In this document: piece after piece, positions 1 through 33,817 of the stretch
Layout of the letters: each line of letters begins with the position of its first letter
Position numbering within the stretch: position 1 is the first letter of the stretch
DNA from: Macrostomum lignano
Lineage: Eukaryota
DNA length: 64,000 nt
Direction of reading: 5' to 3'
NCBI GenBank assembly: GCA_002269645.1
Contig: NIVC01002778.1
Span: 77,238 to 141,237, forward strand
Position numbers and translations under genes: made by a program
The notes under the pieces: model-generated
What the model was told of the DNA's origin: nothing
The model's database searches: none
Seen by the model: only the letters and a program-made list of their open reading frames with translations

Positions 1-379
1 TGATTAAGTTGTCCTTGGTTTCTGTTTGTAAAATCTCAGACAGTTGCCTGCTGCAATCCCTCAACGGTGTTTCATCATGCGAATTGGATCTGATAACTGC
101 TGTCCGCGCACCCGTTAAACTCTCTGCCCCTCAGTTGTGCGATGCCTTCCCCGCTCACCCTGCAGCCAATCAGCTTGGATGCTTCTCTTTTATCAGGCGC
201 AACTCCACTCCACCCAAATATCGATTAATTAATAATACATTGACAATCAAGGCAGTGAAGTGGCCAAGCCTTCTCTTACATCCAGTGACTTTGTCTTTTA
301 CCTCTCATGACTCGAGTGACTGTCTGACAACGTGTTTTTTGTTGTTGTTATTGTTTTTTATCTCCAAAGTCAGCCTACA

Positions 380-2150: not shown

Positions 2151-3361
2151 TGCAGGTTAAAGTCTCTCAATCTTTGCGAGTGACGCAACTTAGCTACGCC
2201 ACGCGGCAGACTTGAGTTGAGGAATGGAGTGGGGGAGCGGTGTGCGAGGGTTGGACGGATTGAAGCTGCCCCGATCAGTTTTCTTGACTTTCTTGACTAT
2301 TTACCAACACTGAAATGTCAATGTTGGTGAGTATATATGATATATGATAAGATAAAGAGACACAAAATATATTGAAAAAGACACTCATGCCACAGAATAT
2401 ATTCTGTATATTCTGTGCACCCACGCTGTCTGATAAAACCAGTCAAGTTGAGGCTGCAACTCCAAATACGATATGAAATAACAAAAATCTTTAAAGAAAC
2501 AATTGCTTAAATACTTCAGATTTAAGTGAAAAAACAGCACAAAAAACTGCGATTTATAAATGGAAATACGCCGCATGCTGCATCAAGCTGCCTTTTAGTC
2601 ATTGTTCATTGACAGGCAAATGTGCTTATGCCTGCAGCAAAGTCTGAAAATGAAAATTATATTTTTCTAGTTCACCTCTCTTGTCCGCCAGTAGGTCTCA
2701 GCAAAACACTCAAACGTGAGCAGCTTTAGGCTTTGACAGATGGAAATGCGTCAGCAAGTTTAGTGCAGCTTCTTTCTGCAGTGTCCCGCGTCTCAGAGAG
2801 CTTGAGATTCGCAAATGAGTTGATAAAAGTTCGCTCTGCAATGCCCACAGGCAAAGCTGAGGAGAGGGTATTGGAGTGAAACGGCTGCTTGACACTTGAA
2901 TAGCAAGATTTTCGTCTTTAGAATCTCAGTGCTTTCGGCTTGAATAGCTGTTTTTTATTATTAAGAAATGGGCAAGAGAGATGGCGGCTTCCACAATGGC
3001 TGACCGTCTCCATGATTGTTGCTACACCATGGGGTTGGCAGAATTTGTACAGAGACGCTGCACACAGTCAGGCCTAAGGACAAAGTCTGAGCGATGTGCT
3101 GCATAAGACCATGTGCTCAATCAAGTGCTTATGTCTCTGTTTTTCTATTGTGCTCAGGTTATAAAAGTTCGCACAGGTAGTTGAAAACTCGGAGCGTAAA
3201 TAGCCTTTGCACTGGGATGTGTGCTCACAACCAAAATTGAAATTGCATTTTGACTTAGAAACCAGGGTTGAAATCACAGCACATCTGCTGAAGCTCGTCT
3301 GCACTAAGCTCCTTGGTAATAAGGAATTTGCTTGTTAAGCCGCTTGTTAACAGCTTTAATA

Positions 3362-3367
3362 ATGAGT
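3362..3367 (+). CDS. Putative first coding exon (ATG AGT) of otopetrin-like gene A
   Basis: ATGAGT followed by a perfect GTAAGT donor at 3368, phase 0; mirrors the ATGCAG|GTGAGA first exon of paralog B at 33331. Confidence 0.45.
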
Positions 3368-3490
3368 GTAAGTTCTCAGATATGTGTTTCAATTTTCTCT
3401 CTGCTTCTGTTAGTTTCAATTTCAGCTCTCTTTATCAGAGGTATTTTCATGCGGAATTATTAATAGAAGCTCGTATTACTCCGGTTTTAG

Positions 3491-3529
3491 GAGCATCAGG
3501 AATTGCTTCCAGTGGTGGATAAAGAAGAG
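3491..3529 (+). CDS. Putative micro-exon 2 of otopetrin-like gene A (EHQELLPVVDKEE)
   Basis: ttttag acceptor, GTGAGA donor, 39 nt, phase 0/0; E-x-Q-x-L-L-P matches paralog B exon 2 (EQQPLLP). Confidence 0.5.
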
Positions 3530-3867
3530 GTGAGAAAATCGGTGATATTAAATGGATAAGGCGAGACGTACAGAAATTTAGAAGTTACTAGCAATCTAGT
3601 GCGGCCCCCCTTCGGGGCGCCCAATAAGCACGGAGCAAAAATAGTTAATGGAAAACAATTAAAAAAGCACATTTTCTTAAACACCAATTCCTTCTTAACT
3701 TTTAAAAATCACCTTATTCATGTAAAATTGTCACGGACAATGATATTTGCTATGAATCTATTTTTTTCTAAAATTAACAAATATACAACAAAATATAACT
3801 TTCACAAAGATAACAGACATTACCCCTAAATAGAAAATATTCCCAAAACAGCAAGCATCCCTCCAGA

Positions 3868-5370
3868 TAGCAAGCACCCCCTCCAAAAGTAAGCAACCGC
3901 AGATAGCAAGCATCCCCTAATACTCGTAGCAAGCATCCACCCAGATAGCGAGCATCCTGCAGACAGCAAGCATTTCCCAAATATTGTAGAATCATCCACC
4001 CAGATAGCAAGCATCTGCAGATAACAAGCATCCCCCAAATATTGTAGAAGCATCCACCCAGATAGCAAGCATCCCCCAAATATTGTAGAAGCATCCACCC
4101 AGATAGCAAGCATCCCCCAAATATTGTAGAAGCATCCACCCAGATAGCAAGCATCTGCAGATAGCAAGCATCCACCCAGATAGCAAGCATCCACCCAGAT
4201 AGCAAGCATCTGCAGATAGCAAGCATCCACCCAGACAGCAAGCATTTCCCAAATATTGTAGAAGCATCCACCCAAATAGCAAGCATCTGCAGATAACAAG
4301 CATCCCCCAAAATATTGTAGAAGCATCCAGCTAGATAGCAAGCATCCCCCAAATATTGTAGAAGCATCCACCCAGACAGCAAGCATCCCCCAGATAGCAA
4401 GCATCCACCCAGACAGCAAGCATCCTGCAGATACCAAGCACCCCCCAGATATTGTAGAAGCATCCACCCAGACAGCAAGCATCTCCCAGATAGCAAGCAT
4501 CCACCCAGACAGCAAGCATTTCCCAAATATTGTAGAAGCATCCACCCAAATAGCAAGCATCTGCAGATAACAAGCATCCCCCAAATATTGTAGAAGCATC
4601 CAGCTAGATAGCAAGCATCCCCCAAATATTGTAGAAGCATCCACCCAAATAGCAAGCATCTGCAGATAACAAGCATCCCCCAAATATTGTAGAAGCATCC
4701 AGCTAGATAGCAAGCATCCCCCAGATAGCAAGCATCCACCCAGACAGCAAGCATCCTGCAGATACCAAGCACCCCCCAGATATTGTAGAAGCATCCACCC
4801 AGACAGCAAGCATCTCCCAGATAGCAAGCATCCACCCAGACAGCAAGCATTTCCCAAATATTGTAGAAGCATCCACCCAAATAGCAAGCATCTGCAGATA
4901 ACAAGCATCCCCCAAATATTGTAGAAGCATCCAGCTAGATAGCAAGCATCCCCCAAATATTGTAGAAGCATCCACCCAAATAGCAAGCATCTGCAGATAA
5001 CAAGCATCCCCCAAATATTGTAGAAGCATCCACCCAGACAGCAAGCATCCCCCAAATATTGTAGAAGCATCCACCCAAATAGCAAGCATCTGCAGATAAC
5101 AAGCATCCACCCAGACAGCAAGCATTTCCCAGATAGCAAGCATCCCCCAAATATTGTAGAAGCATCCACCCAGACAGCAAGCATCCCCCAGATAGCAAGC
5201 ATCCACCCAGACAGCAAGCATCCTGCAGATACCAAGCACCCCCCAGATATTGTAGAAGCATCCACCCAGACAGCAAGCATCTCCCAGATAGCAAGCATCC
5301 ACCCAGACAGCAAGCATCCTGCAGATACCAAGCACCACCCAAATATTGCAGAAGCATCAACCCAGTTAGT
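3868..5370. repeat. Compound minisatellite (interleaved ~17-23 bp units, e.g. cagatagcaagcatccacc / ccaaatattgtagaagcat)
   Basis: Tandem units directly visible; the long Cys/Trp-rich ORFs on - are repeat artefacts. Confidence 0.95.
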
Positions 5371-5419
5371 AAGAATCCATAAAAAGCAAACATCCCTAGA
5401 TAGAAAGAATCCCATACAT

Positions 5420-7282
5420 ATAGCCAAGCTTATCAAGCGCAGTATTCCTTTGTTTGCCAAGCGCAGTAATCATTGGTTTATCAAGTGCAGTAATCCTTGG
5501 CTTATCAAGTGAAGTAAGTTCTGGTCTATCAAGTGCAGTAATCCTTGGTTTATCAAGTGCAGTAAGTCTTGGTTTATCAAGTGCAGAAATCCTTGGTTTA
5601 TCAAGTGCAGAAATCCTTGGTTTATCAAGTGCAGAAATCCTTGGTTTATAAAGTGCCGTAAGTCTTGGTTTATCCAATGCAGTAGTCCTTGGTTTATCAA
5701 GTGCAATAATCCTTGGTTAATCAAGTGCAGTAATCCTTGGTTTATCAAGTGCAGTAATCCTTGGTTTATCAAGTGCAGAAATCCTTGGCTTATCAAGTGC
5801 AGTAATCCTTAGTTTATCAAGTGCAGTAACCCTTTGTTTATCAAGCGCAGTAGTCCTTGGTTTATCAAGTGCAGTAATCCTTGGCTTATCGAGTGCAATA
5901 ATCCTTGGCTTATCAAGTGCAATAATCCTTGGTTTATCAAGTGCAATAATCCTTGGTTTATCAAGCGCAGTAATCTTTGGCTTATCAAGTGCAATAATCC
6001 TTGGTTTATCAAGTGCAGTAATCCTTGGCCTATCAAGTGCAATAATCCTTGGTTTATCAAGCGCAGTAATCCTTGGCTTATCGAGTGCAATAATCCTTGG
6101 CTTAGCAAGTGCAATAATCCTTGGTTTATCAAGTGCAGAAATCCTTGGTTTATCAAGTGCAGAAATCCTTGGTTTATAAAGTGCCGTAAGTCTTGGTTTA
6201 TCCAATGCAGTAGTCCTTGGTTTATCAAGTGCAGTAATCCTTGGTTAATCAAGTGCAGTAATCCTTGGTTTATCAAGTGCAGTAATCCTTGGTTTATCAA
6301 GTGCAGTAATCCTTGGTTTATCAAGTGCAGAAATCCTTGGCTTATCAAGTGCAGTAATCCTTAGTTTATCAAGTGCAGTAACCCTTTGTTTATCAAGCGC
6401 AGTAGTCCTTGGTTTATCAAGTGCAGTAATCCTTGGCTTATCGAGTGCAATAATCCTTGGCTTATCAAGTGCAATAATCCTTGGTTTATCAAGTGCAATA
6501 ATCCTTGGTTTATCAAGCGCAGTAATCCTTGGCTTATCGAGTGCAATAATCCTTGGCTTAGCAAGTGCAATAATCCTTGGTTTATCAAGTGCAGTAATCC
6601 TTGGCCTATCAAGTGCAATAATCCTTGGTTTATCGAGTGCAGTAATCCTTGGCTTATCAAGTGCAGTAATCCTTGGTTTATCAAGTGCAGTAATCCTTGG
6701 TTTATCAAGCGCAGTAGTCCTTGGTTTATCAAGTGCAGTAATCCTTGGCTTATCGAGTGCAATAATCCTTGGCTTATCAAGTGCAATAATCCTTGGTTTA
6801 TCAAGTGCAATAATCCTTGGTTTATCAAGCGCAGTAATCTTTGGCTTATCGAGTGCAATAATCCTTGGCTTATCAAGTGCAATAATCCTTGGTTTATCAA
6901 GTGCAATAATCCTTGGTTTATCAAGCGCAGTAATCTTTGGCTTATCAAGTGCAGTAATCCTTGGTTTATCAAGTGCAGTAATCCTTGGCCTATCAAGTGC
7001 AATAATCCTTGGTTTATCAAGCGCAGTAATCCTTGGCTTATCGAGTGCAATAATCCTTGGCTTAGCAAGTGCAATAATCCTTGGTTTATCAAGTGCAGTA
7101 ATCCTTGGCCTATCAAGTGCAATAATCCTTGGTTTATCAAGCGCAGTAATCCTTGGCTTATCGAGTGCAATAATCCTTGGCTTATCGAGTGCAATAATCC
7201 TTGGCTTATCCAGTGCAATAATCCTTGGCTTATCCAGTGCAATAATCCTTGGTTTATCAAGTACAATAATCCTTGGCTTCTA
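5420..7282. repeat. 24-bp minisatellite (ttatcaagtgcagtaatccttggt) with higher-order structure
   Basis: About 75 copies; variant markers recur at 528 and 552 bp spacing (22-23 monomers). Confidence 0.95.
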
Positions 7283-7364
7283 ATCCATAATCCAGGTCTT
7301 TTTAATTAGTTTTTTAATAAAAGCTTTCAATAAAAAATTTATGCTACTTTTATTCTTTTATACA

Positions 7365-7430
7365 CTACTAAGATTCGAACCCAGGTTGCTGCATTAGCAG
7401 TCCAGTGTGTTCACATCTAGGCTAGCTCTC
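7365..7430 (-). mobile_element. tRNA-derived SINE head / tRNA-like remnant
   Basis: Minus strand: A-box-like TAGCCTAGATG, anticodon-arm-like CTGGA-CTGCTAA-TGCAG, B-box GGGTTCGAATC; no complete cloverleaf. Confidence 0.5.
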
Positions 7431-7545
7431 ATTGAAATTGTAAATGAATTTGTAGCACTTATAATTCAACACTCACACCAAGTCAATAGAGTAAAAGTTA
7501 CACGAGGCAGTTATGACATAATCAATTTCTTAGGCAAGTCAGTAC

Positions 7546-8025
<480 letters not shown>

Positions 8026-8053
8026 CTATTGCTACATCGATTCCCATGCGCAG

Positions 8054-8629
8054 GCATACCAGTACACCGAGAACAAGCGCACTTTTACATGGAAGACAAA
8101 CAGCGCAGCCCAGTTAATTGGCGCTGCGCTGCCCTACGCTAAAGCTGCAGCAAAAGCCGCAGAAAAAGCTGTCGAGAACGCGAAAACGGACCACAGTGCG
8201 ACGGCAGATAGTCTGAAGGCTGCGACCAGATCGATCCAGGACGGACTGGGGTCAGCGAAAATGGCTGCTGAGGCAGCGGAGCAGGCGGCAAATGCAGCTC
8301 AACAAATGGCCGCGGCTTCTGGACAGGGCGGAGCGAGCAGGCTCGAGGCCAAAGCTAAACTTGTACAACTCACCGAATCAGCGGCAAAAGACTTGGTTCG
8401 CGCGCTCGAAGGCACGGGTGCGGTGGCGAAGACGGCCTCAGGTACCATCGAGACACCCGAGCGATTGGCCCTGGCCCACACGGCCTCAAAATTGGTGCTC
8501 AGCTGTGCCAGAGCAGCAGCAGGGATCGCCGCAGAGTCCAAGCGGCTTTCTGAGACGCTGGCCAGTCCCCAGGCGGATCAGTTCGTTCCCGGAGTGAATA
8601 AGATAAACCGAATCAATGATGGTCTCGGT
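8054..8629 (+). CDS. Ala-rich helical module 1, exon a (192 codons)
   Basis: gcgcag acceptor, open frame AYQYTENK...RINDGLG, GTAAGT donor at 8630, phase 0/0. Confidence 0.75.
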
Positions 8630-8692
8630 GTAAGTTACAGTTACAGTTTTTTATGTGCATGGCTTTTGCAATCGCTTTGCTTGCATTTATAG

Positions 8693-9184
8693 GCTGAGCT
8701 GCGATCCCAATGGGAGTCAATAATCCAGACAGTTGAGGGAGCTGCAGCTGCGGCAGAACAGACCGCCACGAGTGTCCAAGCCACTCGTTTGGAGAACACG
8801 GTTGAGACGGCAAGAAGAGCGGAAGCCGAGGCTCGAACGGCAGCGGACGTGACAAATCTGTTCTCAGTGGCGGCTGAGCACGGATTGCTGAAATTCAAGG
8901 CCGAGGCCATAAAAGCAGCGGCGGCCGCGGCGAAGAAACTGGTGACGGCTTCTGTTGAAACGGTGAAACTGGCAACCGAGGCATCCATTGCGGCTGGAGA
9001 AAACGACGCAAACGCGTGCAAATCAGCGGTCTCTGTGGCGAGTAGGTGTGCCTGTCACACTGTTAGAGCTGCGCGGCATTCGGCAGAAGCGGCTCAGTCA
9101 GCTGCCAGCAATGACCCGGACGAAACCATCGCTGTTGGGGCTGCAGATGAAGCAAAGACGGCCGTTGACGAAATCAGGAAGCTG
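8693..9184 (+). CDS. Ala-rich helical module 1, exon b (164 codons)
   Basis: Follows a 63-bp GT-AG intron (8630-8692); AELRSQWES...DEIRKL; GTGAGT donor at 9185, phase 0/0. Confidence 0.75.
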
Positions 9185-10527
9185 GTGAGTCCCATTGCGC
9201 TATTTACTGTCCCGACCTAATTCCTCGATAATTCTGTGAGACATGTTAAATGTGAGAAACCTTTCAAGATTGTCTACTGCAAAGTGCAAAAAAACTAGTA
9301 AGTTATAGGAATGCGGCCAGCACCCAAGTCTTGAACATATCGAATTATCGTCTCTCTGACTGTGAAATCGAAATTTTAGGAATGGGGATAACTTTGTGCT
9401 AGCCCTAATAAGTATGGGGTCCAACGTCCTTTCCTATGACTCCATCAGGGTATTCAAGCAAAGAATAGTGCTCAATTCCCTGCTTCAACGTCGGACATGT
9501 GCGTTTACCCAGTGCACCCGTTACAATGGCCGAGCTTCAATCCCCAACATCAACTTGGACAAGTGGCGCTCTCACAGGGACCTTTTTGAAAGCCTAGCAA
9601 GATCAGCATCCCAAGAATCATACACAACAAGCCAAACCTTCAGGAGCAGCAGAGAATGGCATTAAAGACTCTTCGAGACAATAGCAGCATTGTCATTAAA
9701 CCTGCCGACGAGGGTAGCAATATGGTCGTTATGAATCGAACTGATTACGTACTGGAAGCTAACAGACAGCTCTCCAACGGGACCTTCTACCAGCCCCTTG
9801 ACACTGCAATGAGCGCTCAAGACCTTGAAGAGGAAAAGATAATTACTCATCCTCAATACTCGCAACTGATCCCGCCGCTTATTCCTAGAGATCGTTTTTT
9901 ACCTTTTGCAAAAGATTCCCAAGGATCCCGAAGAATGGCCTATTTCTGGAGTGCCTGGATTACCTAGCGGAAAGCTACATGAGCGCCAAAATCGATCTCT
10001 TCCTACAGCCGATCGCTAAGGAATAAGACTCCTTCATCCGAGACACGGACCACTTTCAAGCGGTTATCAATGATTTGATTTTTGAAGAAGACGAAAATGT
10101 CTTTCTGGTTAATGGATGTTAAATCCCTGTCCACCAATATTCCCACTGATAAGGGGATGGACGCCATTAGAGATGCCTTTCAAAATTTTCCCCAACCTTA
10201 AGGCCGGAAAACCATCTACTTGCGCTCCTGGACATTAACTTGAGCAGGATTTGTTCTCAACGACACGCGCTTATCTTAAGTCAAAGGCACAAGCATGGGA
10301 AAGGCTTTTGCGCCATCCTACGCCAACATCTTTATGTTTGCCTGGGAATTCAAAGCTTTAGAAGCTGCTCCGTTTACCCCTCATTTTTTCAAGCGCTACA
10401 ATACATTGATGGCATTTCTATGGTTTTCCTCGGTACTGAAGTCGAATTGAAGGAGACGCACATACATCTGAATGAATTCGATAGCAACATCCGACTCACG
10501 ATGCAATACAACAGAGAGAAGATATAC

Positions 10528-13500
10528 TGTGCATCAGGCCTAGGTGTTTTAACTAGACTAGAATTTACGTGGGTGTTCAATTACCTGATATGCATCGTGC
10601 GTTCAATTATGGGGTATCGTTCCTTTTGATTGCGAGATATCAAGCGAGACTATAACTAAAACACAACAAATGGCGACGAGCGGACTCCCGTACCCAGCGG
10701 AGTTTCAACCAGTACCAGGAGAACCTCCTGTGCCATGGGCAAGGAGGATCAAGTCATATGAGAACTTCCTTGTAGCTGGAGATCTCGAAGAGGCATCAGA
10801 GAGTCGGAAAAGGCGATCCTCCTGCATCTGCTCGGTGAGGAAGGACGCCGCCGAGCTGCAAACGTCGATGCAAGCAAGTCGCTTCAGGAGACAAAAAAGC
10901 ACCGAAGGCGATTTTCTGCTCGTCGAGGAGCAGCGAGCCCAGCACGACTGCAAGAGCATCTGTGACTACGTGATGGCCCTGAGAGAACTGGCAACAAACT
11001 GCAACTATGGCACCTTCCACGACGAGATGATTCGAGACCAACTCGTGGAGAAAACCTGCGTACCTCGCATCAGGGAAAGACTTCTGATAGAGGAGGAAAA
11101 TCTGACACTAGATGACGCCATCAAGAAGGCTGAGCGAATCGAAGCAGCCATCAGGGACGCCAAGCAGGTCAGTGGCCGAGAGCTCCACGTGATGGCGCTG
11201 AGCAAGAAGCATAAGCCAGTTGCTCGCCATGAGAAGACTGCGGCACCAGGTCCAAAGTGCACTCGATGCGGGGGCAACCGCGGACACAAAGGTGAATGCA
11301 AGGCGATGGGTCAGAAATGCAGACGATGCGGCAAGATGAACCATTTCGAGGCGTATGGTGGATCCGCCATCAAGACCATCGGCAAGGTCGAGCTTCCGGC
11401 GACATTCAACGGCATCAAAACGGATGCAACCTTCTACGTCGCCGACAAGGGAGCCAACATCCTGGGTCGAGACCTGTTCCATGCCCTTGGATTTCAGATC
11501 TTCCAAGGCGACAACAAAGTATTTGGCATCAGCGAGGCGACAATTGAGCAGGATTTCCCTGGAATCTTTGACGGTCTAGGTCGATCCAAGAGCTTCATTC
11601 ACCGGACGAAGATCGACGCCTCAGTGCGGCCGGTGTCACAACCGATGCGAAAGATTCCGATTGGCCTGAAGGATAAAGTTGCGTCTGAGATTCGCCGGAT
11701 GGAGCAGCAAGGCATCATCAAGAAAGTCGTAGCCTTCGAGTGGGTCAGAAACATCGTAGTGACGCGCAAGAAGGAGTCCAACCAAGTTCGGCTATGCGCA
11801 GATCTGCGGCAGTTAACAAAGCGGTGATAACAGACCGCTACCCAGTGCCGACATCTCGGCGCGGATCAACGGCTCGAAGTGCTTCAGCAAGCTCGACCTC
11901 CGACAAGGCTATCAACAGATTCCGCTGCATCCCGACTCTCAAGGGCTGACGTGCTTCATCAGCGATTCCGGCCTGTACCAGTTCACCGTGGTACCATTTG
12001 GACTGTCCAGCTCGGGTGCCGCTTTCCAATGAGCCCGTCAGTCCGTGCTTCAAGAAGCCTCAGGCGCCATCAACATCGTGGACGACATCCTGGTGTACGG
12101 CAAGGACGAAGCGGAGCACGACAAGAACCTCAGTGAAGCCCTGTAGAGAATCCATCGCGAAGGCTTCACCCTCAATCGCGAGAAATGCAAGTTCAAACAG
12201 CCAAGCGTCGAGTTCTTCGGGCTGGTGATATCGGCTGATGGCATCAAGCCGACCAAGTCCAATGTTGACGCCATTTTGAAATTCCTGAGGCGACTTCAGT
12301 TGCGCAAATTTAATCTTTCTTGGGCGCTGTGAACTTTTTGCACAAGTTCATACCGCACTACTTTACTATTTCCGAGCCCCTGAAGCAATTGCTAAAAAAG
12401 GGGGCGGACTGGCACTGGAGCGAGCGAGAACGTACAGCCTTTTGTACACTCAAGTCAGCCGTGACAAGCAGCACAGTGTTGGCTACCCTTCGACTGCCAA
12501 GCTACCTGTAATGCAAGTTTAGACTGCCCGGGCGCGGTTCTCTGCCAAGTACAAAATGGACGTGAGGTGCCGATCGAGTTTGCATCTAGAGCTCTGAGTC
12601 CAGCGGAAAGCGATACTCAGCGGGCGAGCGAGAAGCATTGGCCTGCGTATGGAGCATCGAGCGCTGGCACTACTACCTCATGGCAGACGCGTGACACTGC
12701 GTACGGACCACAGTGTCTTTGACGACGCTGCTCGACTCCAAGGGCATGGGCCACCGGCTTCTACGCATCCATTGATGGGTCGAAAGACTGCGCGGCTATG
12801 ACATCCGGTTTGCACACATCCCCGGCGCGGAGAACCAGTGCGCAGACATGCTGTCCAGATGGGCCACAACCGAGCGAGTTCCAGCCGAGGAGACAGATGA
12901 GGAGGGCTACATCTACGCAATCGTCAACTCAAAGACAACGCTGACAGCCGATAAGCTAGCGACTGCAACCAGGGACGATGAAGAACTACAGGGGGTTCTA
13001 CGACACATCGCTGAAGGCTGGCCGACCGAGGTGATCAGTACTCTACGGCCGTACTACAACATTCGCGAAGAGCTCTTCTGCTGGAACAACGGTCAGTGCG
13101 TCGGCCGAGGCGAACGCGCGGTTATCCCAGAGTCTGCGACTTCAGGTCATCGAGGAGGTTTACGAAGGTCATCCCGGCATACTCAGGACAAAGCAGCGCT
13201 GCCGCGACACGGTCTAGTTTCCTGGCATCGATCGGCACGTAGAGGACCACGTCAAGAACTGCGCGGCCTGCACACTCGCGGAGAAGACCGGCAAGCCGCA
13301 GAACCAGTCGAGTGGCCAGAGGGACCGTGGGACAAGGTCGAGATCGACATCTTCGGCGAAATCACCGCGGCTCCTCGGCATCAGCGATACCTACTGGTAA
13401 TCCACGACCTCTACAGCAAGTGGCCGGAGATTACTGCCATGGAGAAAGTGACCTCTGCCAACATCATCAAGGCGCTGCGGAAACATCCTGGAGTATTCGG

Positions 13501-14193
13501 TCGATGGGGCGTGCCAAAAATGCTGATCAGCGACAATGGACCCCAGTTCGTCAGTGAGGACTTCGAGGACTTCCAGCGAGCGGAAGGAATCCAGCACATC
13601 CAGGGCAACGGCGGAGTCGAGCGGTTCAACCGAAGTCTGAAGGAGGGCCTTGCGGCGAACCTGAGGGCGGGAGTGAAGTTCGAGGAAGCCATCGACTTGG
13701 TGCTCAAGACCTACAGGACCAGCCAGCACGCTCTCACCGGACTGGCGCCAGATGAGCTCATGATCGGGCGCAAGCTGCGTTCCGGGCTGCAGCTGCTCAG
13801 ACCAACTCCGGTGCAACAGCGGGACAACAGCAACCTGCGAGACGCTATCACTGAGAGGCAAGCCAAGAAAGCTGACTACACCAACAAGCGAAGGCGAGCT
13901 CAGGACTCTACGCTCCAGGCCGGAGACTGGGTCTGGTGACAGACGCGGCACCGAGCGCACAAGCTGGCGACCCGACTGAAGGAACCTCTGAAGATCACCC
14001 CTCAAGCAGGGCGGAACACGTTCGTGCTTTCATGGACACCAAGTGGCAAGCGAGTCCGCTGGTGAAGTGCAACAACTCACCGGCTGACAACGGCGCGGCC
14101 GACCAATTAAGAGGACGATTTGCTCGATATACCGCTGCCGCCGGCTCCGCCCCCGCTGATGGGCGAGCCGCCACGTCCACCTGAACTTCGAAG
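10528..14193 (+). mobile_element. Mag-like Ty3/Gypsy element nested in the Penelope RT; 5' LTR present, 3' end deleted
   Basis: LTR ends ...ACACAACA at 10668 (LTR start approximate), PBS TGGCGACGAG at 10671; gag knuckles CTRCG..H..EC / CRRCGKMNHF; RT IVDDILVYG (~12073); RNase H; integrase IDIFGE, LISDNGPQF; many frameshifts; protease active site missing. Confidence 0.88.
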
Positions 14194-14654
14194 CTTCGAA
14201 GCATCCTGAAAAAACAAAGATACTCTGTCCACGGGAGTTCGGCTTCCAGGATTATGGCAATCTAAGCTGCCGTCCTTGAAAAGAGCAGGGAAACTTTGGC
14301 CAAGTTTGTTTGGGATCTTGCGCAACAAAAATAATTTACAAAATTTGTCAAAAAGTCCGCTGTGACTCCAGGAATGTGGTGTATGCCATTCTCTGCAAGA
14401 CTTGCAATGACCGCTGTATCTACGTAGGTGAGACTGGAGGCGCTCTTAAGGTCAGACTTCAAGCTCACCTGAGCGACATCAGACTGGCTAAGGACACCTC
14501 AATCTCCGGACACTTTCGGTCACCAAACCATAATATTCAGGATCTCCGCTTTATGGGAGGAATATGGAGCAGAAGCTCTTCGCTTTACTACAGACTTGAC
14601 TCCGGCAGGCTTAAACACCGTCATCACTGAGAAAGACGCCTGCATCCCAATAGT

Positions 14655-14946
14655 TGTAGGGGTTGTAGCCTCGTGATTAGAGCATCGGACTCACGACTGG
14701 AAGGTCGGGGGTTCGATTCTCGACCCACTTAGAACAATTCGTGTCCTTGAGCAAGACACTTGCACTGCTTCATTACCCCAGCATTAGCTGGGGTAATTGA
14801 GGGTCTGTGTAGCGACCACCCCAGTCATTGGACTGAACAGCCGTACCCAGCCTTCAGATGCGCCGCGCAATAGCTGCGGTTGAGCTGTCGGTTGCACATT
14901 TGGTCATTGGGGCAGGTGTAATCAGTTATTATTTATTATTATTATT
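14655..14946 (+). mobile_element. tRNA-derived SINE with (TTA)n tail and 11-bp TSD
   Basis: TSD atcccaatagt at 14644-14654 and 14947-14957; A-box TAGCCTCGTG, B-box GGTTCGATTC, central GTGTCCTTGAGCAAGACACTT motif (recalled from MetaSINE-type SINEs). Confidence 0.85.
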
Positions 14947-15265
14947 ATCCCAATAGTGATCCCTTTCACGGACCACTCTGGGCGAGTTGTTCATCAAATT
15001 TGCACGGCCATTCCGAACCACGCTGCAGAGTTGGATACGGTGGCTGCCTATACTCGCTCACGCTCATTAAAGGACATTCTATGTAAATCCAACCTGCCGC
15101 CGTAACTAATGGTCGGTCCCAAAAATTAAACCTTTTTTCAGATGAGCACTAGATGTGCCCGCCCAACCATATTGAGCATTTTATTTTACACCTTTCTTTC
15201 CATACTCACTATGAATACTCAACTCTTTTCACCCCCTTCGCCCCCTTTTCACTGATTCACTTTTC

Positions 15266-15463
<198 letters not shown>

Positions 15464-15491
15464 CTATTGCTACATCGATTCCCATGCGCAG

Positions 15492-16067
15492 GCATACCAG
15501 TACACCGAGAACAAGCGCACTTTTACATTGAAGACAAACAGCGCAGCCCAGTTAATTGGCGCTGCGCTGCCCTACGCTAAAGCTGCAGCAAAAGCCGCAG
15601 AAAAAGCTGTCGAGAACGCGAAAACGGACCACAGTGCGACGGCAGATGGTCTGAAGGCTGCGACCAAATCGATCCAGGACGGACTGGGGTCAGCGAAAAT
15701 GGCTGCTGAGGCAGCGGAGCAGGCGGCAAATGCAGCTCAACAAATGGCCGCGGCTTCTGGACAGGGCGGAGCGAGCAGGCTCGAGGCCAAAGCTAAACTT
15801 GTACAACTCACCGAATCAGCGGCAAAAGACTTGGTTCGCGCGCTCGAAGGCACGGGTGCGGTGGCGAAGACGGCCTCAGGTACCATCGAGACACCCGAGC
15901 GATTGGCCCTGGCCCACACGGCCTCAAAATTGGTGCTCAGCTGTGCCAGAGCAGCAGCAGGGATCGCCGCAGAGTCCAAGCGGCTTTCTGAGACGCTGGC
16001 CAGTCCCCAGGCGGATCAGTTCGTTCCCGGAGTGAATAAGATAAACCGAATCAATGATGCTCTCGGT
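15492..16067 (+). CDS. Ala-rich helical module 2, exon a (192 codons)
   Basis: Copy of 8054-8629 at offset 7438; same splice sites; 4 visible substitutions. Confidence 0.75.
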
Positions 16068-16130
16068 GTAAGTTACAGTTACAGTTTTTTATGTGCATGG
16101 CTTTTGCAATCGCTTTGCTTGCATTTATAG

Positions 16131-16613
16131 GCTGAGCTGCGATCCCAATGGGAGTCAATAATCCAGACAGTTGAGGGAGCTGCAGCTGCGGCAGAACAGA
16201 CCGCCACGAGTGTCCAAGCCACTCGTTTGGAGAACACGGTTGAGACGGCAAGAAGAGCGGAAGCCGAGGCTCGAACGGCAGCGGACGTGACAAATCTGTT
16301 CTCAGTGGCGGCTGAGCACGGATTGCTGAAATTCAAGGCCGAGGCCATAAAAGCAGCGGCGGCCGCGGCGAAGGAACTGGTGACGGCTTCTGTTGAAACG
16401 GTGAAACTGGCAACCGAGGCATCCATTGCGGCTGGAGAAAACGACGCAAACGCGTGCAAATCAGCGGTCTCTGTGGCGAGTAGGTGTGCCTGTAGGTGTG
16501 CCTGGCATTCGGCAGAAGCGGCTCAGTCAGCTGCCAGCAATGACCCGGACGAAACCATCGCTGTTGGGGCTGCAGATGAAGCAAAGACGGCCGTTGACGA
16601 AATCAGGAAGCTG
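16131..16613 (+). CDS. Ala-rich helical module 2, exon b (161 codons)
   Basis: Copy of 8693-9184 with a net 9-bp in-frame deletion; GTGAGT donor at 16614, phase 0. Confidence 0.75.
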
Positions 16614-17081
16614 GTGAGTCCCATTGCGCTATTTACTGTCCCGACCTAATTCCTCGATAATTCTGTGAGACCTGTTAAAAGAGAGAAACCTCTGTTAAAA
16701 CAGAGTAAGTAGATGAAGTTAAACGTTTCTGTATTCATAGTAGTTTAGTTTTTATACTAAAAACTTTTTGCGAAAAATGCTGTGAGGGGCAGTGAGACAC
16801 AAACTAATGACAAATCGTGGCAGTCTTTTGGTTACTGCAAATGTTAAATGGTTTTTAGTAAAGCATTCTAGAGAAAAAATTTCTTAGCGTGGAACGCTAC
16901 ATAACCTGCACCCTTTGGCTGTTGAAATGAAGGAACAGTTTTTTGTTTGTATGAGAGAAGGATAGCTGAGATTTGAGTAAATTTAGCGACCGATCCTGAG
17001 CTTAGCGGTCAGCAAATCCAAGCGTACGTCATCATTACAACAAATCATTTCGTTCTCACGTCTCCCTCATGACGGCATCAG

Positions 17082-18821
17082 GCGGAATCTCAGCAGAATG
17101 GAAGCAGCCCGGTGCGTCTGACGCTTGACTCTCGCTGCAAACTGGTTGGCTTTGTTGTTTTCTTCGTCATCGTGATGCTGGCGTTCGTGGTGGAGGTGCG
17201 GGCCTACGATGAGGACCAGAAATATGAGAACGAGCATCAGACTGGAAAGCGGAATCGAAAAATCTGTGTGGAATGCTACGTGTTCAGATTGCTTTTCGTT
17301 GCTCTGGCTATGATTTCAATCGTCTATCTTGAGTGCAGGGTGCTCAAGTCTGGCCGAGCACGGCTGGCCTATGTTGGAGCAGTCAGAATTTCGAATGTTC
17401 CCGCTAGTATTGCCGCTCCTGTGGAGCTGTGCAACCTGCCATCAGTTCTGTTTGCTTCTGCTTTTCAATTATTTGCGTTTCTAAAATTATTTTTAAATTT
17501 GCTGGGAATCGTCTGCGGTGCAATGGAATTCGGATTCGTGGATTCGTCAGAACTGGACTACACTCCACACGGCATTGTCATGCTCATTAGACACGCGTTG
17601 TTATTCGTCTTTACTGTGCTGCAAACGCGCTTCTTTATAAAGTACTGCAAAGCGTCAATTCAGCTCAAGCTTGGCAGGTCCTGGCTGCCTCTCTCCATTG
17701 TGATGGCAGCGAATATTGGCGTGTGGTTCACCACAGTGGGCATTGAGCTGCAGGATATCGGCAGACCGCATAAAGAAATCGCTAATGGCACCTATTGCTA
17801 TGATAAAAAGATAAACAAAATCAAGGAGTTCTTGTACCCCTTCGAAATAGAATACTGCGTCATGTCATCTCTAATGGCCTACATGCTGATGTCCAACATG
17901 GGCAGGCTAGCAGAATTCCTGCACCGTCAGGTCCGCTCGGGGCCCGTTAAGTCACAGGAAATCGTTCGCAGAGTCAAGCGCATCATGCTGCGGAGTGGAG
18001 GCGCGCAAGGCGGCAGTCACGAAGATCAGGCGCAGTCCGAATTCGCTTCGATCAGAAAGCACTCATGGATGATTTCGATTGGCGCCGTGGCTGTGGTAGC
18101 TTCGCTAACTGTCGTTGCATTCGTCCACTTCGACGACGAAAATAATCCGGTCCTCATAATTGTGCTCTTCTCGCTGCAAATGGGTTCACATGCACTTTCG
18201 ATTCCGGTTCTCGCCGTGCTGCTTTTCTGCTATTTTCGAGTTGATAAGAACCGGCGCATCGGCTCCGACAATCTGGTCGACCGGCTGCTGCTGTGGCTTG
18301 GCGTCATCGCTATTGTAGGCAACAACGCTTACAATTTTTTGAAAAATTTTAGTCTTACGATTGAGCTCTTGGAAAACTTTTTCGGCGCCGTTCAGTCAGT
18401 TTTGCAAGCGGTGTTCCTGGAACTGATGCTCGTTGGCGCGTTCACGCTGGACAACAAACTGCACGAGGCGTTGAAAAGGTTTTTAGGCCGATGCTTTCCA
18501 AGGAATTTTGTCAGTTACATGCTGAGCTTTCTGATTCTGCTCAACATTTGTGAGTGGGTCCTAAGCGCCCTCTGCTTTCCGTTCTTTTTCCAAAGAGAAG
18601 AAGACAAAAAGGAAGGTTTGTTCTTATTGCTCATGCCGCTGAAGGTTTTCTACAGGTTTCACTCGGTCATGAGCATTCAGGATTTTAAGAAGCACCATCT
18701 GAGAGTGGAGACTGCACGGAACTGTACAGCCGGACGTGAGTCTGACGATGAATCGGGAGCTGACGCCGTGCTGATCCATTTCACTGATATTGAGAATGGC
18801 GAACTTGAAGCCAATGGGTGA
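17082..18821 (+). CDS. Otop: Otopetrin-like proton channel A, large terminal exon (579 aa)
   Basis: Multi-TM ORF with otopetrin hallmarks ANIGVW, LYPFEIEY..MSNMGR and C-terminal FYRFHS; frame open from 17073; pyrimidine-rich acceptor ...ggcatcag|gcg at phase 0; first ATG (17175) lies inside TM1, so an upstream exon is needed. Confidence 0.8.
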   Translation, partial: AESQQNGSSPVRLTLDSRCKLVGFVVFFVIVMLAFVVEVRAYDEDQKYENEHQTGKRNRKICVECYVFRLLFVALAMISIVYLECRVLKSGRARLAYVGAVRISNVPASIAAPVELCNLPSVLFASAFQLFAFLKLFLNLLGIVCGAMEFGFVDSSELDYTPHGIVMLIRHALLFVFTVLQTRFFIKYCKASIQLKLGRSWLPLSIVMAANIGVWFTTVGIELQDIGRPHKEIANGTYCYDKKINKIKEFLYPFEIEYCVMSSLMAYMLMSNMGRLAEFLHRQVRSGPVKSQEIVRRVKRIMLRSGGAQGGSHEDQAQSEFASIRKHSWMISIGAVAVVASLTVVAFVHFDDENNPVLIIVLFSLQMGSHALSIPVLAVLLFCYFRVDKNRRIGSDNLVDRLLLWLGVIAIVGNNAYNFLKNFSLTIELLENFFGAVQSVLQAVFLELMLVGAFTLDNKLHEALKRFLGRCFPRNFVSYMLSFLILLNICEWVLSALCFPFFFQREEDKKEGLFLLLMPLKVFYRFHSVMSIQDFKKHHLRVETARNCTAGRESDDESGADAVLIHFTDIENGELEANG

Positions 18822-20026
18822 ATTAATTTTTAGACTGATTTTTAGACTATTGCCTGTCCTTTTGTCTTTGCTTGCATGCTGGTAGGTTTCACGTCGCTGA
18901 CCCTGCATATCCGCTTGTGCAAAGCAAAAGCAGCAGCCTAGGGGTCGGGCAAGGAGTTGGAACAAAGGGTTCGGGCAGAAGCATTGAGTCATCTCATCCA
19001 GGTGCTTTCCTTGGGCTCCCAGGGGATAAAATGATGATGAACTTGAGATTTCGGAGCTGAACTTCGAGCTTTATTCTGGTGCTGAAGCTGAGATAAATGA
19101 AGTACGTTTAATAAAGTACATGGTCACTACTTTACTCGAGTAGTTAAAGTAAAAAGATTGTGATGGAAGGAACCGAGTTGGGATCTGAGCACCAAAGCTC
19201 CGGTACCTTTCTTTAGTTTGCTATTGGAAACTTACCTTGCACTAAACAGATTCACATGCACCGCAAGCTGGGTTTTCACGAATCATTGTCTTTTTTACGA
19301 TTGTTTTTTTCATTTAATCCATATGTTTTTTGATCGTTATCTCTGATTAATTCAGTTAATATATATTAATCAAGCTTATATTTATATATTCTGCAAGTAG
19401 CTCCTATAGTTAGATTTTAAAAACTTGTTTTTCTGCATTGCACCAAGGACGAATTGAATATGACGAGCAACTTGAATATGATAGTTTTCACTCTTTCGAT
19501 ACAAACAAAGCAACAAATGTTTTTTGGAAGCGGATCGCAGCTTGTCTTTTTACGAGTAATTACTTGCCTGCTTAATTGAATTTCGTAAAGCTTCATTCGG
19601 TTCCTTCTCGTTCCGGTATGAATCCATAATGCCCCCATTTATTATTGTACACCAAAGCGCCTGTTTAGAAGTTTTCTTAGAAGTTTCTAATACTTTTTAA
19701 GGAAATAACAAATCATACAGTTGTGTCGAGCATGTACACAGTTTCTTGTGCGTTCATTTATTTCAGAATTTTCTGATTGATATATATTTATAAACATTCA
19801 TGCGTGATCCTACTACACACACTAATAAATGTTCCGCACGGTTCAACAGCAGCAGGTCACCTGCCGCTGAGGACAGCTTCCGTTTCATTTCTTTCTTGGA
19901 AAAAATAATCAGCTTAAGGCGCAAAAAATACATTTAAGTAATTACATACAGTAAAATTAGTTAGAACAGACATGCTCATCTACAGAGGCAGCGGAACAGC
20001 GGAAAATGGGAGCAGAGAGGGAAGAA

Positions 20027-20482
20027 GGGCCAGAGGGGGCAGAGGGGCAGAGGGGGCAGAGGGGACAGAGGGGGCAGAGGGGGCAGAGGGGGCAGAGGGG
20101 GCAGAGGGGACAGAGGGGACAGAGGGGGCAGAGGGGCAGAGGGGGCAGAGGGGGCCAGAGGGGGCAGAGGGGCAGAGGGGGCAGAGAGGACAGATGGGGC
20201 AGAGGGGCAGAGGGGGCAGAGGGGGCCAGAGGGGGCAGAGGGGGCAGAGGGGGCAGAGAGGACAGATGGGGCAGAGGGGGCAGAGGGGCAGAGGGGGCAG
20301 AGGGGACAGAGGGGGCAGAGGGGCAGAGGGGGCAGAGGGGGCAGAGGGGACAGAGGGGGCAGAGGCGGCAGAGGGGGCAGAGGGGGCAGAGGGGCAGATG
20401 GGGCAGAGGGGGCAGAGGGGGCAGAGGGGCAGAGGGGAAGAGAAGGAAAAGGGTGAAGAGGAGGCAGAGGGGCAGAGGGGGC
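20027..20482. repeat. G-rich 8-9 bp tandem repeat (ggggcaga / gggggcaga)
   Basis: Dozens of G4-G5 tracts; unit length varies freely, so it is non-coding. Confidence 0.95.
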
Positions 20483-20794
20483 AAAAGGGGCATCCCAAAG
20501 CTAGGAGGGCGCAGCTGCCTCATTTCTTGACCAAAATGGCTCAGCCGCAATCAAGGAATTCCGAATCCATCAGGGGAAGTCAAGGCGGTCATTGACCCTT
20601 AGTCAAGAAAAATATGCCTCGCGGGGGCACCGGCATAATATTTTCAGCTCATAACAGACATAAACTAATATTACATTTTGCAAGATAAAAGAGACTGCGT
20701 TGATGCAAGCATTGATGAAGCAAAACTAAGAAGACCGTTGCAGGAGTCTGCATTCTCAAACCCATTTTTTAAGTAATAAAATAATGGAATTAGC

Positions 20795-33330: not shown

Positions 33331-33336
33331 ATGCAG
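33331..33336 (+). CDS. Otop: Otopetrin-like gene B exon 1 (ATG CAG)
   Basis: gccATGCAG|GTGAGA, phase 0, followed by a 99-bp intron. Confidence 0.55.
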
Positions 33337-33435
33337 GTGAGAAAGTAGGCTGCTTTCCTGTATTAGTATTTTGCATGACGATTCCATGAACTTTGTTTTA
33401 TACATTCTAAGTTTGATGACCATTTATTTTATTAG

Positions 33436-33498
33436 GACGCTCAGGGGTCAGTGCAGCAGCAAGACAGCGAGCAACAACCGCTGCTGCCGGAGAGAAAG
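33436..33498 (+). CDS. Otop: Otopetrin-like gene B exon 2 (DAQGSVQQQDSEQQPLLPERK)
   Basis: tttattag acceptor, aag|GTACAC donor, 63 nt, phase 0/0. Confidence 0.6.
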
Positions 33499-33551
33499 GT
33501 ACACTTAATATCCCCTCAGAAGGTATTTAAAAGATTATATAAAGTGTACCT

Positions 33552-33730: not shown

Positions 33731-33817
33731 ATGAGTGCAACCCTGAATCCGGGTTGTAAGCAGCGGCAACTACCAGTACTAGCGTATTTGAGTTTTCAAC
33801 TCTGTTTTTCCCCGCAG

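Follow-up and report, generated by a model that had tools for sequence, protein, structure and literature searches.

Canonical otopetrins, which include vertebrate OTOP1-3, arthropod OtopLa-c and nematode OTPL, have a cytosolic N-terminus, and OTOP3 carrying an N-terminal GFP tag is functional (PMC6483595). The N-terminus of these proteins is a short tail. Its length across the family is 62.4 ± 37.3 residues, with a maximum of about 200 in a 2008 survey (PMC2268672). The Macrostomum lignano otopetrin described here would have a cytosolic N-terminal region of about 390 residues with one copy of an Ala-rich module, or about 740 with two, against 62 ± 37 in the canonical members (PMC2268672), and its predicted structure is helical. 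Drosophila OtopLA reaches the 947 residues of the annotated M. lignano protein, but mainly through a 337-residue internal loop and not through its N-terminus.

The window, a stretch of 64,000 nucleotides, is 100% identical to GenBank contig NIVC01002778.1 of M. lignano. The annotated gene BOX15_Mlig033405g1, here called A, spans exactly 3362-18821. The explanation put forward, which is likely as a whole, is that A encodes an otopetrin fused to one copy of a lineage-restricted module, and that the module was recently duplicated around a nest of transposable elements (TEs).

Exon organization

Seven intervals on the forward strand, 3362-3367, 3491-3529, 8054-8629, 8693-9184, 15492-16067, 16131-16613 and 17082-18821, are all open and have lengths divisible by 3. 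Every one is phase 0, with AG before it and GT(A/G)AG after it. Joined together, they form a frame of 1303 codons whose sole stop is the terminal one, which bears out the seven-exon frame of about 1303 residues proposed by the sequence-only reading.

Exon 1 (3362-3367) consists of ATG AGT (MS) with the donor GTAAGT. It provides the first residues of PAA55266.1, the transcript-derived GenBank model of 947 residues, and its homolog in paralog A′ is ATGATGAGT followed by GTAAGT. Exon 2 (3491-3529) is a 13-codon micro-exon, EHQELLPVVDKEE, which is phase 0 at both ends and present in PAA55266.1; its counterparts are the micro-exon EQQLHSLADGEE in A′ and another in paralog B. Satellites occupy 3850-8025 of intron 2 (Tandem Repeats Finder), with a complex 19/41/96/331-bp array at 3850-5378, 77 copies of a 24-bp unit at 5430-7276 and (CTAT)120 at 7546-8025. 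The homologous intron of A′ is about 1.1 kb long.

The four module exons are 3a (8054-8629, 192 codons), 4a (8693-9184, 164 codons), 3b (15492-16067, 192 codons) and 4b (16131-16613, 161 codons). Only the proposed frame is open in these exons, with 1-10 stops in each of the other five. Exons 3a and 4b are part of the GenBank model; 3b is open, and 4a open and splice-competent, but neither belongs to that model. Intron 4 (16614-17081, 468 nt) leads to exon 5 (17082-18821), which encodes a complete otopetrin channel of 579 codons plus the stop, as judged from Pfam, PDB matches and hydropathy.

The channel exon

Exon 5 has no usable start codon, because TGA lies at 17070, 12 nt 5′ of the acceptor, and no in-frame ATG occurs before residue 32 of the exon, which is already within TM1. 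The earlier claim of a startless exon at 17082 with a phase-0 acceptor is therefore correct, and upstream coding exons are needed. The exon matches the Pfam Otopetrin family PF03189, as its assignment to that family had implied, with E=2.4e-8 and 33.7 bits (cut-off 27.8). Like the canonical otopetrins, it is collinear with the OTOP2, OTOP1 and OTOP3 chains in the PDB (E=1e-4 to 6e-3) and has about 12 hydrophobic segments in a hydropathy scan. The motifs that align with the PDB chains are YPF-IEY in TM6 and FYR-H in TM12; the TM6 Glu-Tyr (YPFEIEY) and the TM12 FYRxH are common to the M. lignano channel and the canonical members. Unlike these members, the M. lignano gene has its whole channel in a single exon that lacks a start codon.

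The Ala-rich module

The module has 353-356 residues, 27% of them Ala, and is encoded by a pair of phase-0 exons. An AF2 model built from a 3-sequence alignment is all-alpha with 8 helices, at low confidence (pLDDT 60.7). The hydrophobic moment of every helix exceeds that of shuffled sequences (z = 1.5-4.3), and the hydropathy scan gives no TM-like segment. The module is thus predicted to be all-helical and amphipathic, with about eight helices, in agreement with its original description as an amphipathic helical domain.

Searches of Pfam and the PDB returned no homolog of the module. A phmmer search of 1.84e9 representative proteins, a set that includes both annotated M. lignano proteomes, matched only PAA55266.1 and UniProt A0A1I8ITR4. 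Judged by these searches, the module is an orphan restricted to the M. lignano lineage. The I/LWEQ domain, the actin-binding domain of talin, HIP1R and Sla2, is similarly Ala-rich, with long amphipathic helices and an expected location in the cytoplasm. Even though the automatic UniProt name of A0A1I8ITR4 carries the I/LWEQ label, there is no match to Pfam PF01608 even at E<=10, and the label probably stems from amino-acid composition. The talin/vinculin-like bundle that had been suggested for the module also fails to appear, with nothing in Pfam I_LWEQ or in PDB sequences (phmmer and profile searches) and only non-significant Foldseek matches, mostly to designed helical bundles.

As in classical symmetric-exon shuffling, both boundaries of the module are phase 0, as is the intron that houses it, so that insertion and tandem duplication both preserve the frame. 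Unlike in classical shuffling, no sequence passed from one gene to another in the duplication, which took place locally at the DNA level around a transposon nest, and neither a donor gene nor any other homolog is found among the 1.84e9 representative proteins. The proposed gain by exon shuffling is not supported.

The paralogs

Paralog A′ (L001, minus strand) lies just upstream of the window, head-to-head with BOX15_Mlig033405g1. It consists of E1′, E2′, one E3′/E4′ module, a 458-nt intron and E5′, with the same phases as A. It matches A0A1I8ITR4 and is without an annotated transcript in Mlig_3_7. Since A′ shares the single-module architecture, the fusion is real and one module is ancestral. 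PAA55266.1 and A′/A0A1I8ITR4 support the claim that an Ala-rich module, spliced in frame, separates micro-exon 2 from the channel exon.

The splice sites of A and A′ are conserved, the four exonic indels (78, 3, 3 and 51 nt) all have lengths divisible by 3, and about 115 substitutions have produced no stops (P=0.016 under random substitution). Within the module, dS is 0.147 and dN/dS is 0.73, so that residue constraint is weak. These comparisons suggest that the module keeps its reading frame but evolves fast, almost neutrally, and it may contribute little. Intron 4 is 98% identical to intron 4′, while the module exons on its flank reach about 89%. The conserved tract extends about 125 bp into the channel exon, where 41 of the first 42 channel residues are identical to P0001; identity is then about 82%. 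From this pattern, the stretch looks like a gene-conversion tract.

The startless channel exon could also be read as a protein made alone, which appears rather improbable. The M. lignano spliced leader (SL), CGGTCTCTTACTGCGAAGACTCAATTTATTGCATG, ends in ATG, and 30% of genes are trans-spliced (PMC8629364), so that an SL joined at 17082 would give M-AESQQNG.... The Ala-rich exons would then be an untranslated leader or a separate upstream cistron, the latter produced by intron retention and ending in EIRKLVSPIALFTVPT and a stop. Read-through of the donor at 16614 does reach a stop after 11 codons, and polycistronic precursors make up about 7% of assembled transcripts (PMC5730564). However, the annotation pipeline, which splits units at SL peaks, kept a single gene with a continuous 947-codon ORF. 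The acceptor at 17082, CATCAG, departs from the trans-splice motif [T/C]TNCAG, and the cis donors upstream favour cis-splicing. In A and A′ alike, a conserved phase-0 donor closes the module and the channel exon opens in phase 0. The unusual conservation of intron 4 between the paralogs would fit trans-splicing of the SL, but its continuation into the channel exon resembles gene conversion.

Paralog B (33332-35953) has a 2-codon exon 1 (33332-33337, MQ), a phase-0 micro-exon 2 with the Q-x-LLP motif (33437-33499, ...EQQPLLPERK) and a single channel exon from 33818. These coordinates and this exon plan match the earlier observation that exons 1 and 2 of A are mirrored in paralog B. Its channel is 38% identical to that of A. 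Paralog B lacks the module, and its phase-0 intron 2 is just 318 bp. A loop of the protein contains an in-frame repeat of 18 copies of an 18-bp unit. No paralog B protein is on record.

The duplication and the transposon nest

In a blastn comparison, 7823-9262 aligns with 15261-16691 at 97.6% identity over 1440 bp. Arm c1 (7823-9262) comprises part of the microsatellite, the module exons 3a and 4a, and 78 bp from the start of the next intron. Arm c2 (15261-16691) comprises a (TCTA)50 microsatellite and the module exons 3b and 4b, with 78 bp of intron after them, and continues into the ancestral intron 4. In unique sequence (7943-9262) the arms are about 99.3% identical, differing by 8 substitutions and one 9-bp indel complex, and both carry derived changes when polarised against A′. 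The homology of A′ to c1 ends at 9262, and the sequence 3′ of 16691 has its homolog in intron 4′ of A′. Two module copies are present between exon 2 and the channel exon, as the sequence-only reading had it, but they are not two independent insertions; both are arms of one recent 1.44-kb duplication.

The arms enclose a degenerate 6-kb TE nest in sense orientation (9263-15260), which has many frameshifts and stops and no second copy elsewhere in the window. It includes a probable Penelope-like element (PLE), with a GIY-YIG domain at 14310-14630 (Pfam E=1.1e-4) and RT-like motifs at about 9650-10620, which were called by eye and not confirmed by Pfam. This element is interrupted by a gag/PR/RT/IN fragment of an LTR element at 10670-13940 (Pfam rve E=1.1e-11; RVT_1 E=6.9e-23 at 11.7-12.4 kb).

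Since an element with GIY-YIG is flanked by 1.4-kb direct repeats, and PLEs form partial tandems (pLTRs), keep introns and can frame host genes (PMC3846280), the Ala-rich repeats might be pseudo-LTRs of the PLE and not host exons, open by chance and incorporated into the channel mRNA by splicing. This is very improbable. The single copy in A′ has no adjoining element and continues into the same intron and channel exon, and its frame is kept over about 15% synonymous divergence. The repeats, at 99.3% identity, contrast with an element that is old and degenerate; there are no more copies within the window or L001, and neither a hammerhead ribozyme nor any other Rfam match was found.

The second module and the nest might instead be an assembly artefact, in which alleles or homeologous copies were concatenated at a true one-module locus. 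In Mlig_3_7, non-repetitive blocks duplicated at >=95% identity add up to 180 Mb, DV1, the line sequenced, has extra large chromosomes (PMC5730564), and purge_dups removed 46% of scaffolds (PMC8629364). Moreover, the left breakpoint lies inside a (TCTA)n microsatellite, and the annotated model contains one exon of each type. This explanation is nevertheless unlikely, given that the structure is internal to a 141-kb long-read contig and not at its end, that the arms differ at 8 sites and an indel, each with derived states of its own, and that c1 has a clean junction with unique TE sequence at 9263.

The number of modules in the mRNA

The duplication does not disturb the frame, and the locus can therefore encode 947/950 residues with one module or 1303 with two. 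PAA55266.1 corresponds exactly to exons 1, 2, 3a (8054-8629), 4b (16131-16613) and 5, that is, to a single Ala-rich module and the otopetrin. The c1-specific residues W13, S53, R59 and G190 show that exon 3a is used, and the c2 variants, E274 and the 9-bp deletion, that exon 4b is used and not 4a. The Mlig_3_7 annotation was derived from RNA-seq by StringTie/TACO, BLAT of de novo transcripts and TransDecoder (PMC5730564), and the one-module mRNA is shown through this transcript-derived annotation. The splice runs from donor 8629 to acceptor 16131, 7.5 kb apart, and skips an identical acceptor only 63 nt away. This 3a-to-4b joint may be an artefact of mapping a collapsed short-read transcript, and therefore the annotated model does not settle the module number.

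It is somewhat short of an even chance that the main mRNA contains both modules, as in the sequence-only reading with its Ala-rich domain of about 710 residues, by way of a 9184/15492 junction (GAAATCAGGAAGCTG joined to GCATACCAGTACACC). The channel would then have 1303 residues, some 740 of them in its N-terminal arm. Both copies are still open. Their splice sites do not differ and are demonstrably competent, since the annotated model employs both the acceptor type of exon 3 and the donor type of exon 4; default exon definition would therefore take in all four module exons. The 3a-4b chimera is what would be expected from de Bruijn collapse of 99% identical repeats anchored at exons 2 and 5, given the methods in PMC5730564. 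Against this, the single-module model is the only one on record, a collection of 15e9 sequences contains no two-module protein, one module is the ancestral state, and the duplication might be an assembly artefact. The 6.3-kb intron would also hold the sense TE nest, possibly with polyadenylation or cryptic splice signals.

Origin and possible role of the module

In the preferred reading, that of a one-module fusion, translation would start at the 2-codon exon 13.7 kb upstream and proceed through the 13-codon micro-exon and a pair of module exons into the channel exon. The module would have been present once in the common ancestor of A and A′. Its origin was probably local, through exonisation or rapid divergence inside intron 2, and not a capture from a donor gene. 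Very recently, a segment reaching from the microsatellite through the two module exons to 78 bp of the next intron would have been duplicated on either side of the 6-kb nest. Because the N-terminus of otopetrins is cytosolic and accepts a folded tag, the module would be a cytoplasmic appendage of about 390 residues. It could, purely by inference, serve as an arm for protein interaction, tethering or spacing, with two such arms per channel dimer, outside the pore. An otopetrin variant with such an Ala-rich, predicted helical N-terminus is previously undescribed.

Structure of the gene and its paralogs

Homology searches with the channel exon and with the module of gene A, the otopetrin gene that carries an Ala-rich helical domain, lead to the same protein, GenBank PAA55266.1 (UniProt A0A267E1F5, 947 aa, 'hypothetical protein BOX15_Mlig033405g1'). 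The gene BOX15_Mlig033405g1 is annotated in assembly GCA_002269645.1 (Mlig_3_7), where its 15,460 bp on contig NIVC01002778.1 are exactly 3362-18821 of the window. The fetched locus L001 matches the window at every base along 28,821 bp and reaches 6,639 bp further upstream (L001 x = window x + 6639). The literature search on Mlig033405 returned 0 papers.

All seven proposed exons are open, have lengths that are multiples of three, and have AG before and GTAAG or GTGAG after them; these donors conform to the species cis-splice donor motif GT[G/A]AG (PMC8629364). Spliced together, they form a frame of 1303 codons whose sole stop is the last codon, as the sequence-only reading had it for seven phase-0 exons in one frame. 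For the module exons, the proposed frame is the sole open one, and the module, with phase 0 at both ends, sits inside a phase-0 intron. At the junctions, exon 2 ends in GATAAAGAAGAG, exon 3 starts with GCATACCAGTAC, exon 4 ends in ATCAGGAAGCTG and exon 5 starts with GCGGAATCTCAG; the peptide across the last junction would read DEIRKL|AESQQNG. Since an in-frame TGA lies 12 nt 5' of the acceptor of the channel exon and the earliest ATG is inside TM1, this exon is unable to start translation alone, which agrees with the claim that it has no usable start codon. The initial observation is confirmed.

Two paralogs lie nearby. A' adjoins window position 1 on the upstream side, head to head with gene A, at L001 15-2979 on the minus strand; no gene is annotated there in GCA_002269645.1. 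It has a single module and corresponds to UniProt A0A1I8ITR4 (P0001, 521 aa), a partial, independent prediction in which a short N-terminus is followed by one module and the channel. Exon E1' of A' reads ATGATGAGT and is followed by the donor GTAAGT; E2' reads EQQLHSLADGEE and is followed by an extra micro-exon (SQQEGTTPPIDEGNAPQQ); E3' (657 nt) and E4' (546 nt) are followed by introns of 69 and 458 nt, respectively, and E5' begins GCGGAATTTCAG. Paralog B (33332-35953, plus strand) has an MQ exon (33332-33337), a 21-codon micro-exon ending in QQPLLPERK (33437-33499) and a channel exon from 33818. It mirrors exons 1 and 2 of gene A, as had been noticed, and shares the three-exon plan at 38% identity, with the module absent. 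Its channel exon holds an in-frame 18-bp x18 tandem repeat (RQDQPQ, 35321-35647). No paralog B protein is on record in the databases searched; the homology search returned nothing, probably because the in-frame repeat saturated the word index.

The channel exon

Cytoplasmic regions of otopetrins are short and poorly understood. Only two families of proton-selective channels are known from eukaryotes, and otopetrins are one of them. The identification of the last exon (17082-18821) as an otopetrin is upheld by Pfam, in which PF03189 scores above threshold (E=2.4e-8, 33.7 bits, cut-off 27.8) in two stretches that cover part of the model only. Against the PDB, phmmer matches OTOP2 (E=1e-4), OTOP1 (3e-4) and OTOP3 (3e-3 and 6e-3). 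The OTOP2 alignment, the only one inspected, has three collinear stretches in which YPFEIEY falls on YPFNIEY and VFYRFHSV on IFYRMHAV; the roles of the conserved Glu-Tyr of TM6 and Tyr of TM12 are taken from PMC6483595. A hydropathy scan finds 10 distinct segments over threshold, and with the weaker segments at about 250-272 and 510-530, which coincide with the aligned TM6 and TM12 positions, there are about 12 in all. Judged from its sequence, the channel exon is an otopetrin.

The module in the channel mRNA

PAA55266.1 consists of exactly exons 1 and 2, 8054-8629, 16131-16613 and 17082-18821. The Mlig_3_7 annotation is RNA-seq-based, not ab initio, and combines StringTie/TACO with BLAT-mapped de novo transcripts; its units are split at observed spliced leader (SL) and poly(A) sites, and its ORFs come from TransDecoder (PMC5730564). 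The annotated model, the A0A1I8ITR4 prediction and the A' gene together place at least one module in the channel mRNA. An orphan helical domain is indeed fused to an otopetrin, and the fusion is already in GenBank, where it is undescribed.

The channel might also be made alone, if the SL, which ends in ATTTATTGCATG, were trans-spliced to the phase-0 acceptor at 17082. The M. lignano SL ends in ATG (PMC8629364), so that the product would begin M-AESQQ. However, the annotation, which splits units at SL peaks, left a single gene here (PMC5730564), and the acceptor CATCAG departs from the trans-splice motif [T/C]TNCAG (PMC8629364). Furthermore, cis donors exist upstream, and the junction between module and channel is in phase in both paralogs. 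A stand-alone channel is possible as a minor SL isoform, beside the mRNA that joins module and channel.

Between A and A', each of the four indels that fall in module exons preserves the frame, with a length that is a multiple of three (78, 3, 3 and 51 nt), every splice site is kept, and there are zero stops across about 115 substitutions, an outcome that random substitution gives in 1.6% of simulations. With dN 0.108 and dS 0.147 (dN/dS 0.73), constraint on the module falls mainly on the reading frame and less on individual residues. Its existing GenBank record, within a hypothetical protein, and this near-neutral evolution make the domain a curiosity of moderate interest and no surprise for the field.

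Nature and origin of the module

The module is 27% Ala, with a net charge of zero and no TM-like segment. The AlphaFold2 model, built from a 3-sequence alignment, has eight helices, each 20-70 residues long, and its confidence is low (pLDDT 60.7, pTM 0.48). Since the hydrophobic moment of every helix exceeds that of its own shuffles (z = 1.5-4.3), the description of an amphipathic, Ala-rich helical module holds.

A phmmer search over 1.84 billion representative proteins finds only two M. lignano otopetrin fusions that contain the module, and a word-indexed search again finds only these two. The module matches nothing in Pfam, and PF01608 (I_LWEQ) has no match at E<=10 on P0001 or P0002. No PDB sequence matches at E<=10, and a profile search of the PDB gives one unrelated match (E=0.83). 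Foldseek finds no talin or HIP1R; its only matches, at E>=0.019, are designed helical bundles, which are meaningless at pLDDT 60.7, and the suggested talin- or vinculin-like bundle gains no support from the structural comparison. Kinship with talin, vinculin or I/LWEQ proteins is set aside as unsupported in Pfam, PDB and Foldseek. Unlike the I/LWEQ domain of talin and HIP1R, the module fits neither the I_LWEQ profile nor the solved I/LWEQ/THATCH structures, and the automatic UniProt name 'I/LWEQ domain-containing' appears unsupported.

Exon shuffling, which had been proposed as the source of the module, is borne out in one respect: the exons are symmetric (0/0) and lie in an intron of the same phase. 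However, no homologous domain was found in an unrelated donor gene, as judged on proteins in the phmmer representatives and the word index. Because homologs are absent outside the two fusions, both the I/LWEQ label and capture from a donor are unsupported. Gene A is a variant within a known channel family, for which neither 'exon shuffling' nor a talin-like fold is supported. Local birth in intron 2, or divergence past recognition, fits better; the fast evolution of the module, the small internal tandem duplications in A' and the satellite-rich intron all speak for such an origin.

One module or two

A single duplication accounts for both modules, one in each of its arms, c1 at 7823-9262 and c2 at 15261-16691. 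Compared by blastn and MAFFT, the arms differ outside a (TCTA)n microsatellite at just 8 substituted sites and in one 9-bp indel complex over about 1.32 kb; the five simple exonic changes among these are all non-synonymous. Variant sites that tell the arms apart include 8091/15529, 8622/16060 and 8936/16374. Polarised against A', c1 has four derived amino-acid changes, and c2 has one and a 9-bp deletion. Since each arm has its own derived changes, the two are distinct sequences and no trivial double reading. The (TCTA)n tract 5' of module exon 3 marks the left breakpoint of the duplication.

The single module of A' directly joins the homolog of 16614-17081 (intron 4), and the homology of A' to c1 ends exactly at 9262; for these reasons one module is the ancestral state. 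Arm c2 with its downstream intron is the ancestral junction, and the duplication is recent and occurred in gene A. The proposal of two inserted module copies stands in that both are open in the DNA, but they are arms of one duplication, and A' has only one.

The intron 8629/16131 of PAA55266.1 joins exon 3 of the first copy to exon 4 of the second over 7.5 kb, although the same acceptor sequence occurs only 63 nt from the donor. Such a splice is unlikely, and it is probably an artefact of collapsed short-read transcripts mapped onto the duplicated locus, as would be expected for 99%-identical repeats with exon 2 as anchor on one side and exon 5 on the other. The GenBank model is therefore no guide to how many modules the mRNA carries. 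Exact look-ups find no isoforms of 1303, 950, 947-bb or 594 aa on record, which is uninformative about RNA. The second module could itself reflect an assembly artefact, as Mlig_3_7 is known to be redundant (PMC5730564, PMC8629364), yet the structure lies inside a long-read contig of 141 kb, away from the contig ends. With the assembly taken as correct, the identical and competent splice sites make a two-module mRNA plausible, at somewhat less than an even chance.

Transposons between the arms

The arms are separated by 5,998 bp of degenerate transposon sequence in sense orientation (9263-15260). It includes a probable Penelope-like element on the plus strand, in which RT-like motifs (about 9650-10620) precede a GIY-YIG domain (14310-14630). 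The latter is found by Pfam close to the cut-off (E=1.1e-4, 22.8 bits against 22.6); the RT-like motifs upstream of it, GKAFAPSYANIFM and YIDGI, were spotted by eye in the degenerate element, and these Penelope-type RT fragments were not detected by Pfam RVT_1. A fragment of an LTR element with gag, RT and integrase (RVT_1 6.9e-23, rve 1.1e-11) interrupts the Penelope-like element. Over 1-20000, Rfam gives no hammerhead ribozyme family at gathering score and ARAGORN calls no tRNA; terminal pseudo-LTRs with hammerhead motifs were not found for the insert. A tRNA-like stretch, GTAGCCTCGTGATTAGAGCATCGGACTCACGACTGGAAGGTCGGGGGTTCGATTC (14650-14730, plus strand), for which there is no ARAGORN or Rfam call, may be SINE-derived. 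That the module itself is a Penelope pseudo-LTR was rejected, since A' has a single copy without an adjacent element and the flanking repeats are host exons common to A'.

Judged by the similarity of the arms and what lies between them, the duplication is very recent and transposon-associated. It could have arisen as a very long target duplication, by template switching in repair, or through Penelope-type partial-tandem formation that took in host sequence; Penelope-like elements can keep introns and frame host genes (PMC3846280). It seems rather unlikely that the whole of a broader reading holds, namely a lineage-restricted, probably locally born and fast-evolving helical domain that is now doubling in frame through this transposon-associated duplication, with one- and two-module proteins both expressed.

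Probable gene conversion and other features of the window

Intron 4 (16614-17081) of gene A shares 98% identity with its counterpart in A', against about 89% for the module exons. The high-identity tract runs on into the channel exon, where 41/42 of the opening residues agree with P0001, and identity then falls to about 82%; at about 98% identity the tract covers window 16611-~17207 against L001 473-1 and beyond. Gene conversion between the inverted paralogs, over about 600 bp, would explain such a tract. That intron 4 instead holds a conserved regulatory element or an internal promoter was considered and set aside, as conversion fits better: the tract crosses the intron/exon boundary.

The window is very rich in satellites and minisatellites, and many of these arrays produce long ORFs, on either strand, that are spurious. 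Arrays lie at 3850-8025, 15266-15463, 19957-20595, 42709-43392, 45323-46303, 47785-49632 and 60316-61089; Tandem Repeats Finder confirmed those in the first two intervals, which include a 24-bp x77 array (5430-7276) and (CTAT)120 (7546-8025), and the remaining intervals are deduced from ORFs whose translations are repetitive. On the minus strand, 22772-28247 is an LTR retrotransposon of the BEL/Pao type, whose long ORFs (gag DUF1759, Peptidase_A17, RVT_1 and integrase) are intact; an RT fragment separate from it is found at 28456-29460. At about 41820-46318, also on the minus strand, a gene for 2-oxoglutarate dehydrogenase E1 (Pfam E1_dh, Transket_pyr and OxoGdeHyase_C) has exons separated by introns with coding-looking minisatellites.

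Possible role of the N-terminal arm

Since TM1 of gene A begins 20 residues into the channel exon, its cytosolic N-terminus has about 390 residues with one module or about 740 with two, whereas that of paralog B has about 35. Across 62 members of the family, the mean length of the N-terminal tail is 62 +/- 37 residues (PMC2268672). Otopetrin N-termini are cytosolic, and an N-terminal GFP-OTOP3 fusion still reaches the membrane and conducts (PMC6483595). The module is most likely a cytoplasmic helical arm, which may serve interaction, anchoring or spacing; it would be present twice per channel dimer and could be dispensable for permeation. The weak constraint on its residues suggests a permissive or structural role, without precise gating.

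The locus is a clean, small example of the addition of a symmetric-phase exon pair to a gene, of in-frame duplication by transposon-associated rearrangement, and of repeat copy number hidden by short-read, transcript-derived annotation. Beside a module-free paralog, this natural otopetrin, whose helical N-terminal domain measures 350-700 residues, offers a comparison to see whether cytoplasmic arms serve in tethering, localising or gating. If the broader reading, with in-frame doubling and expression of one- and two-module proteins, is true, paralog B with no module, A' with one and A with two would form a natural before-and-after series for the effects of an N-terminal arm.
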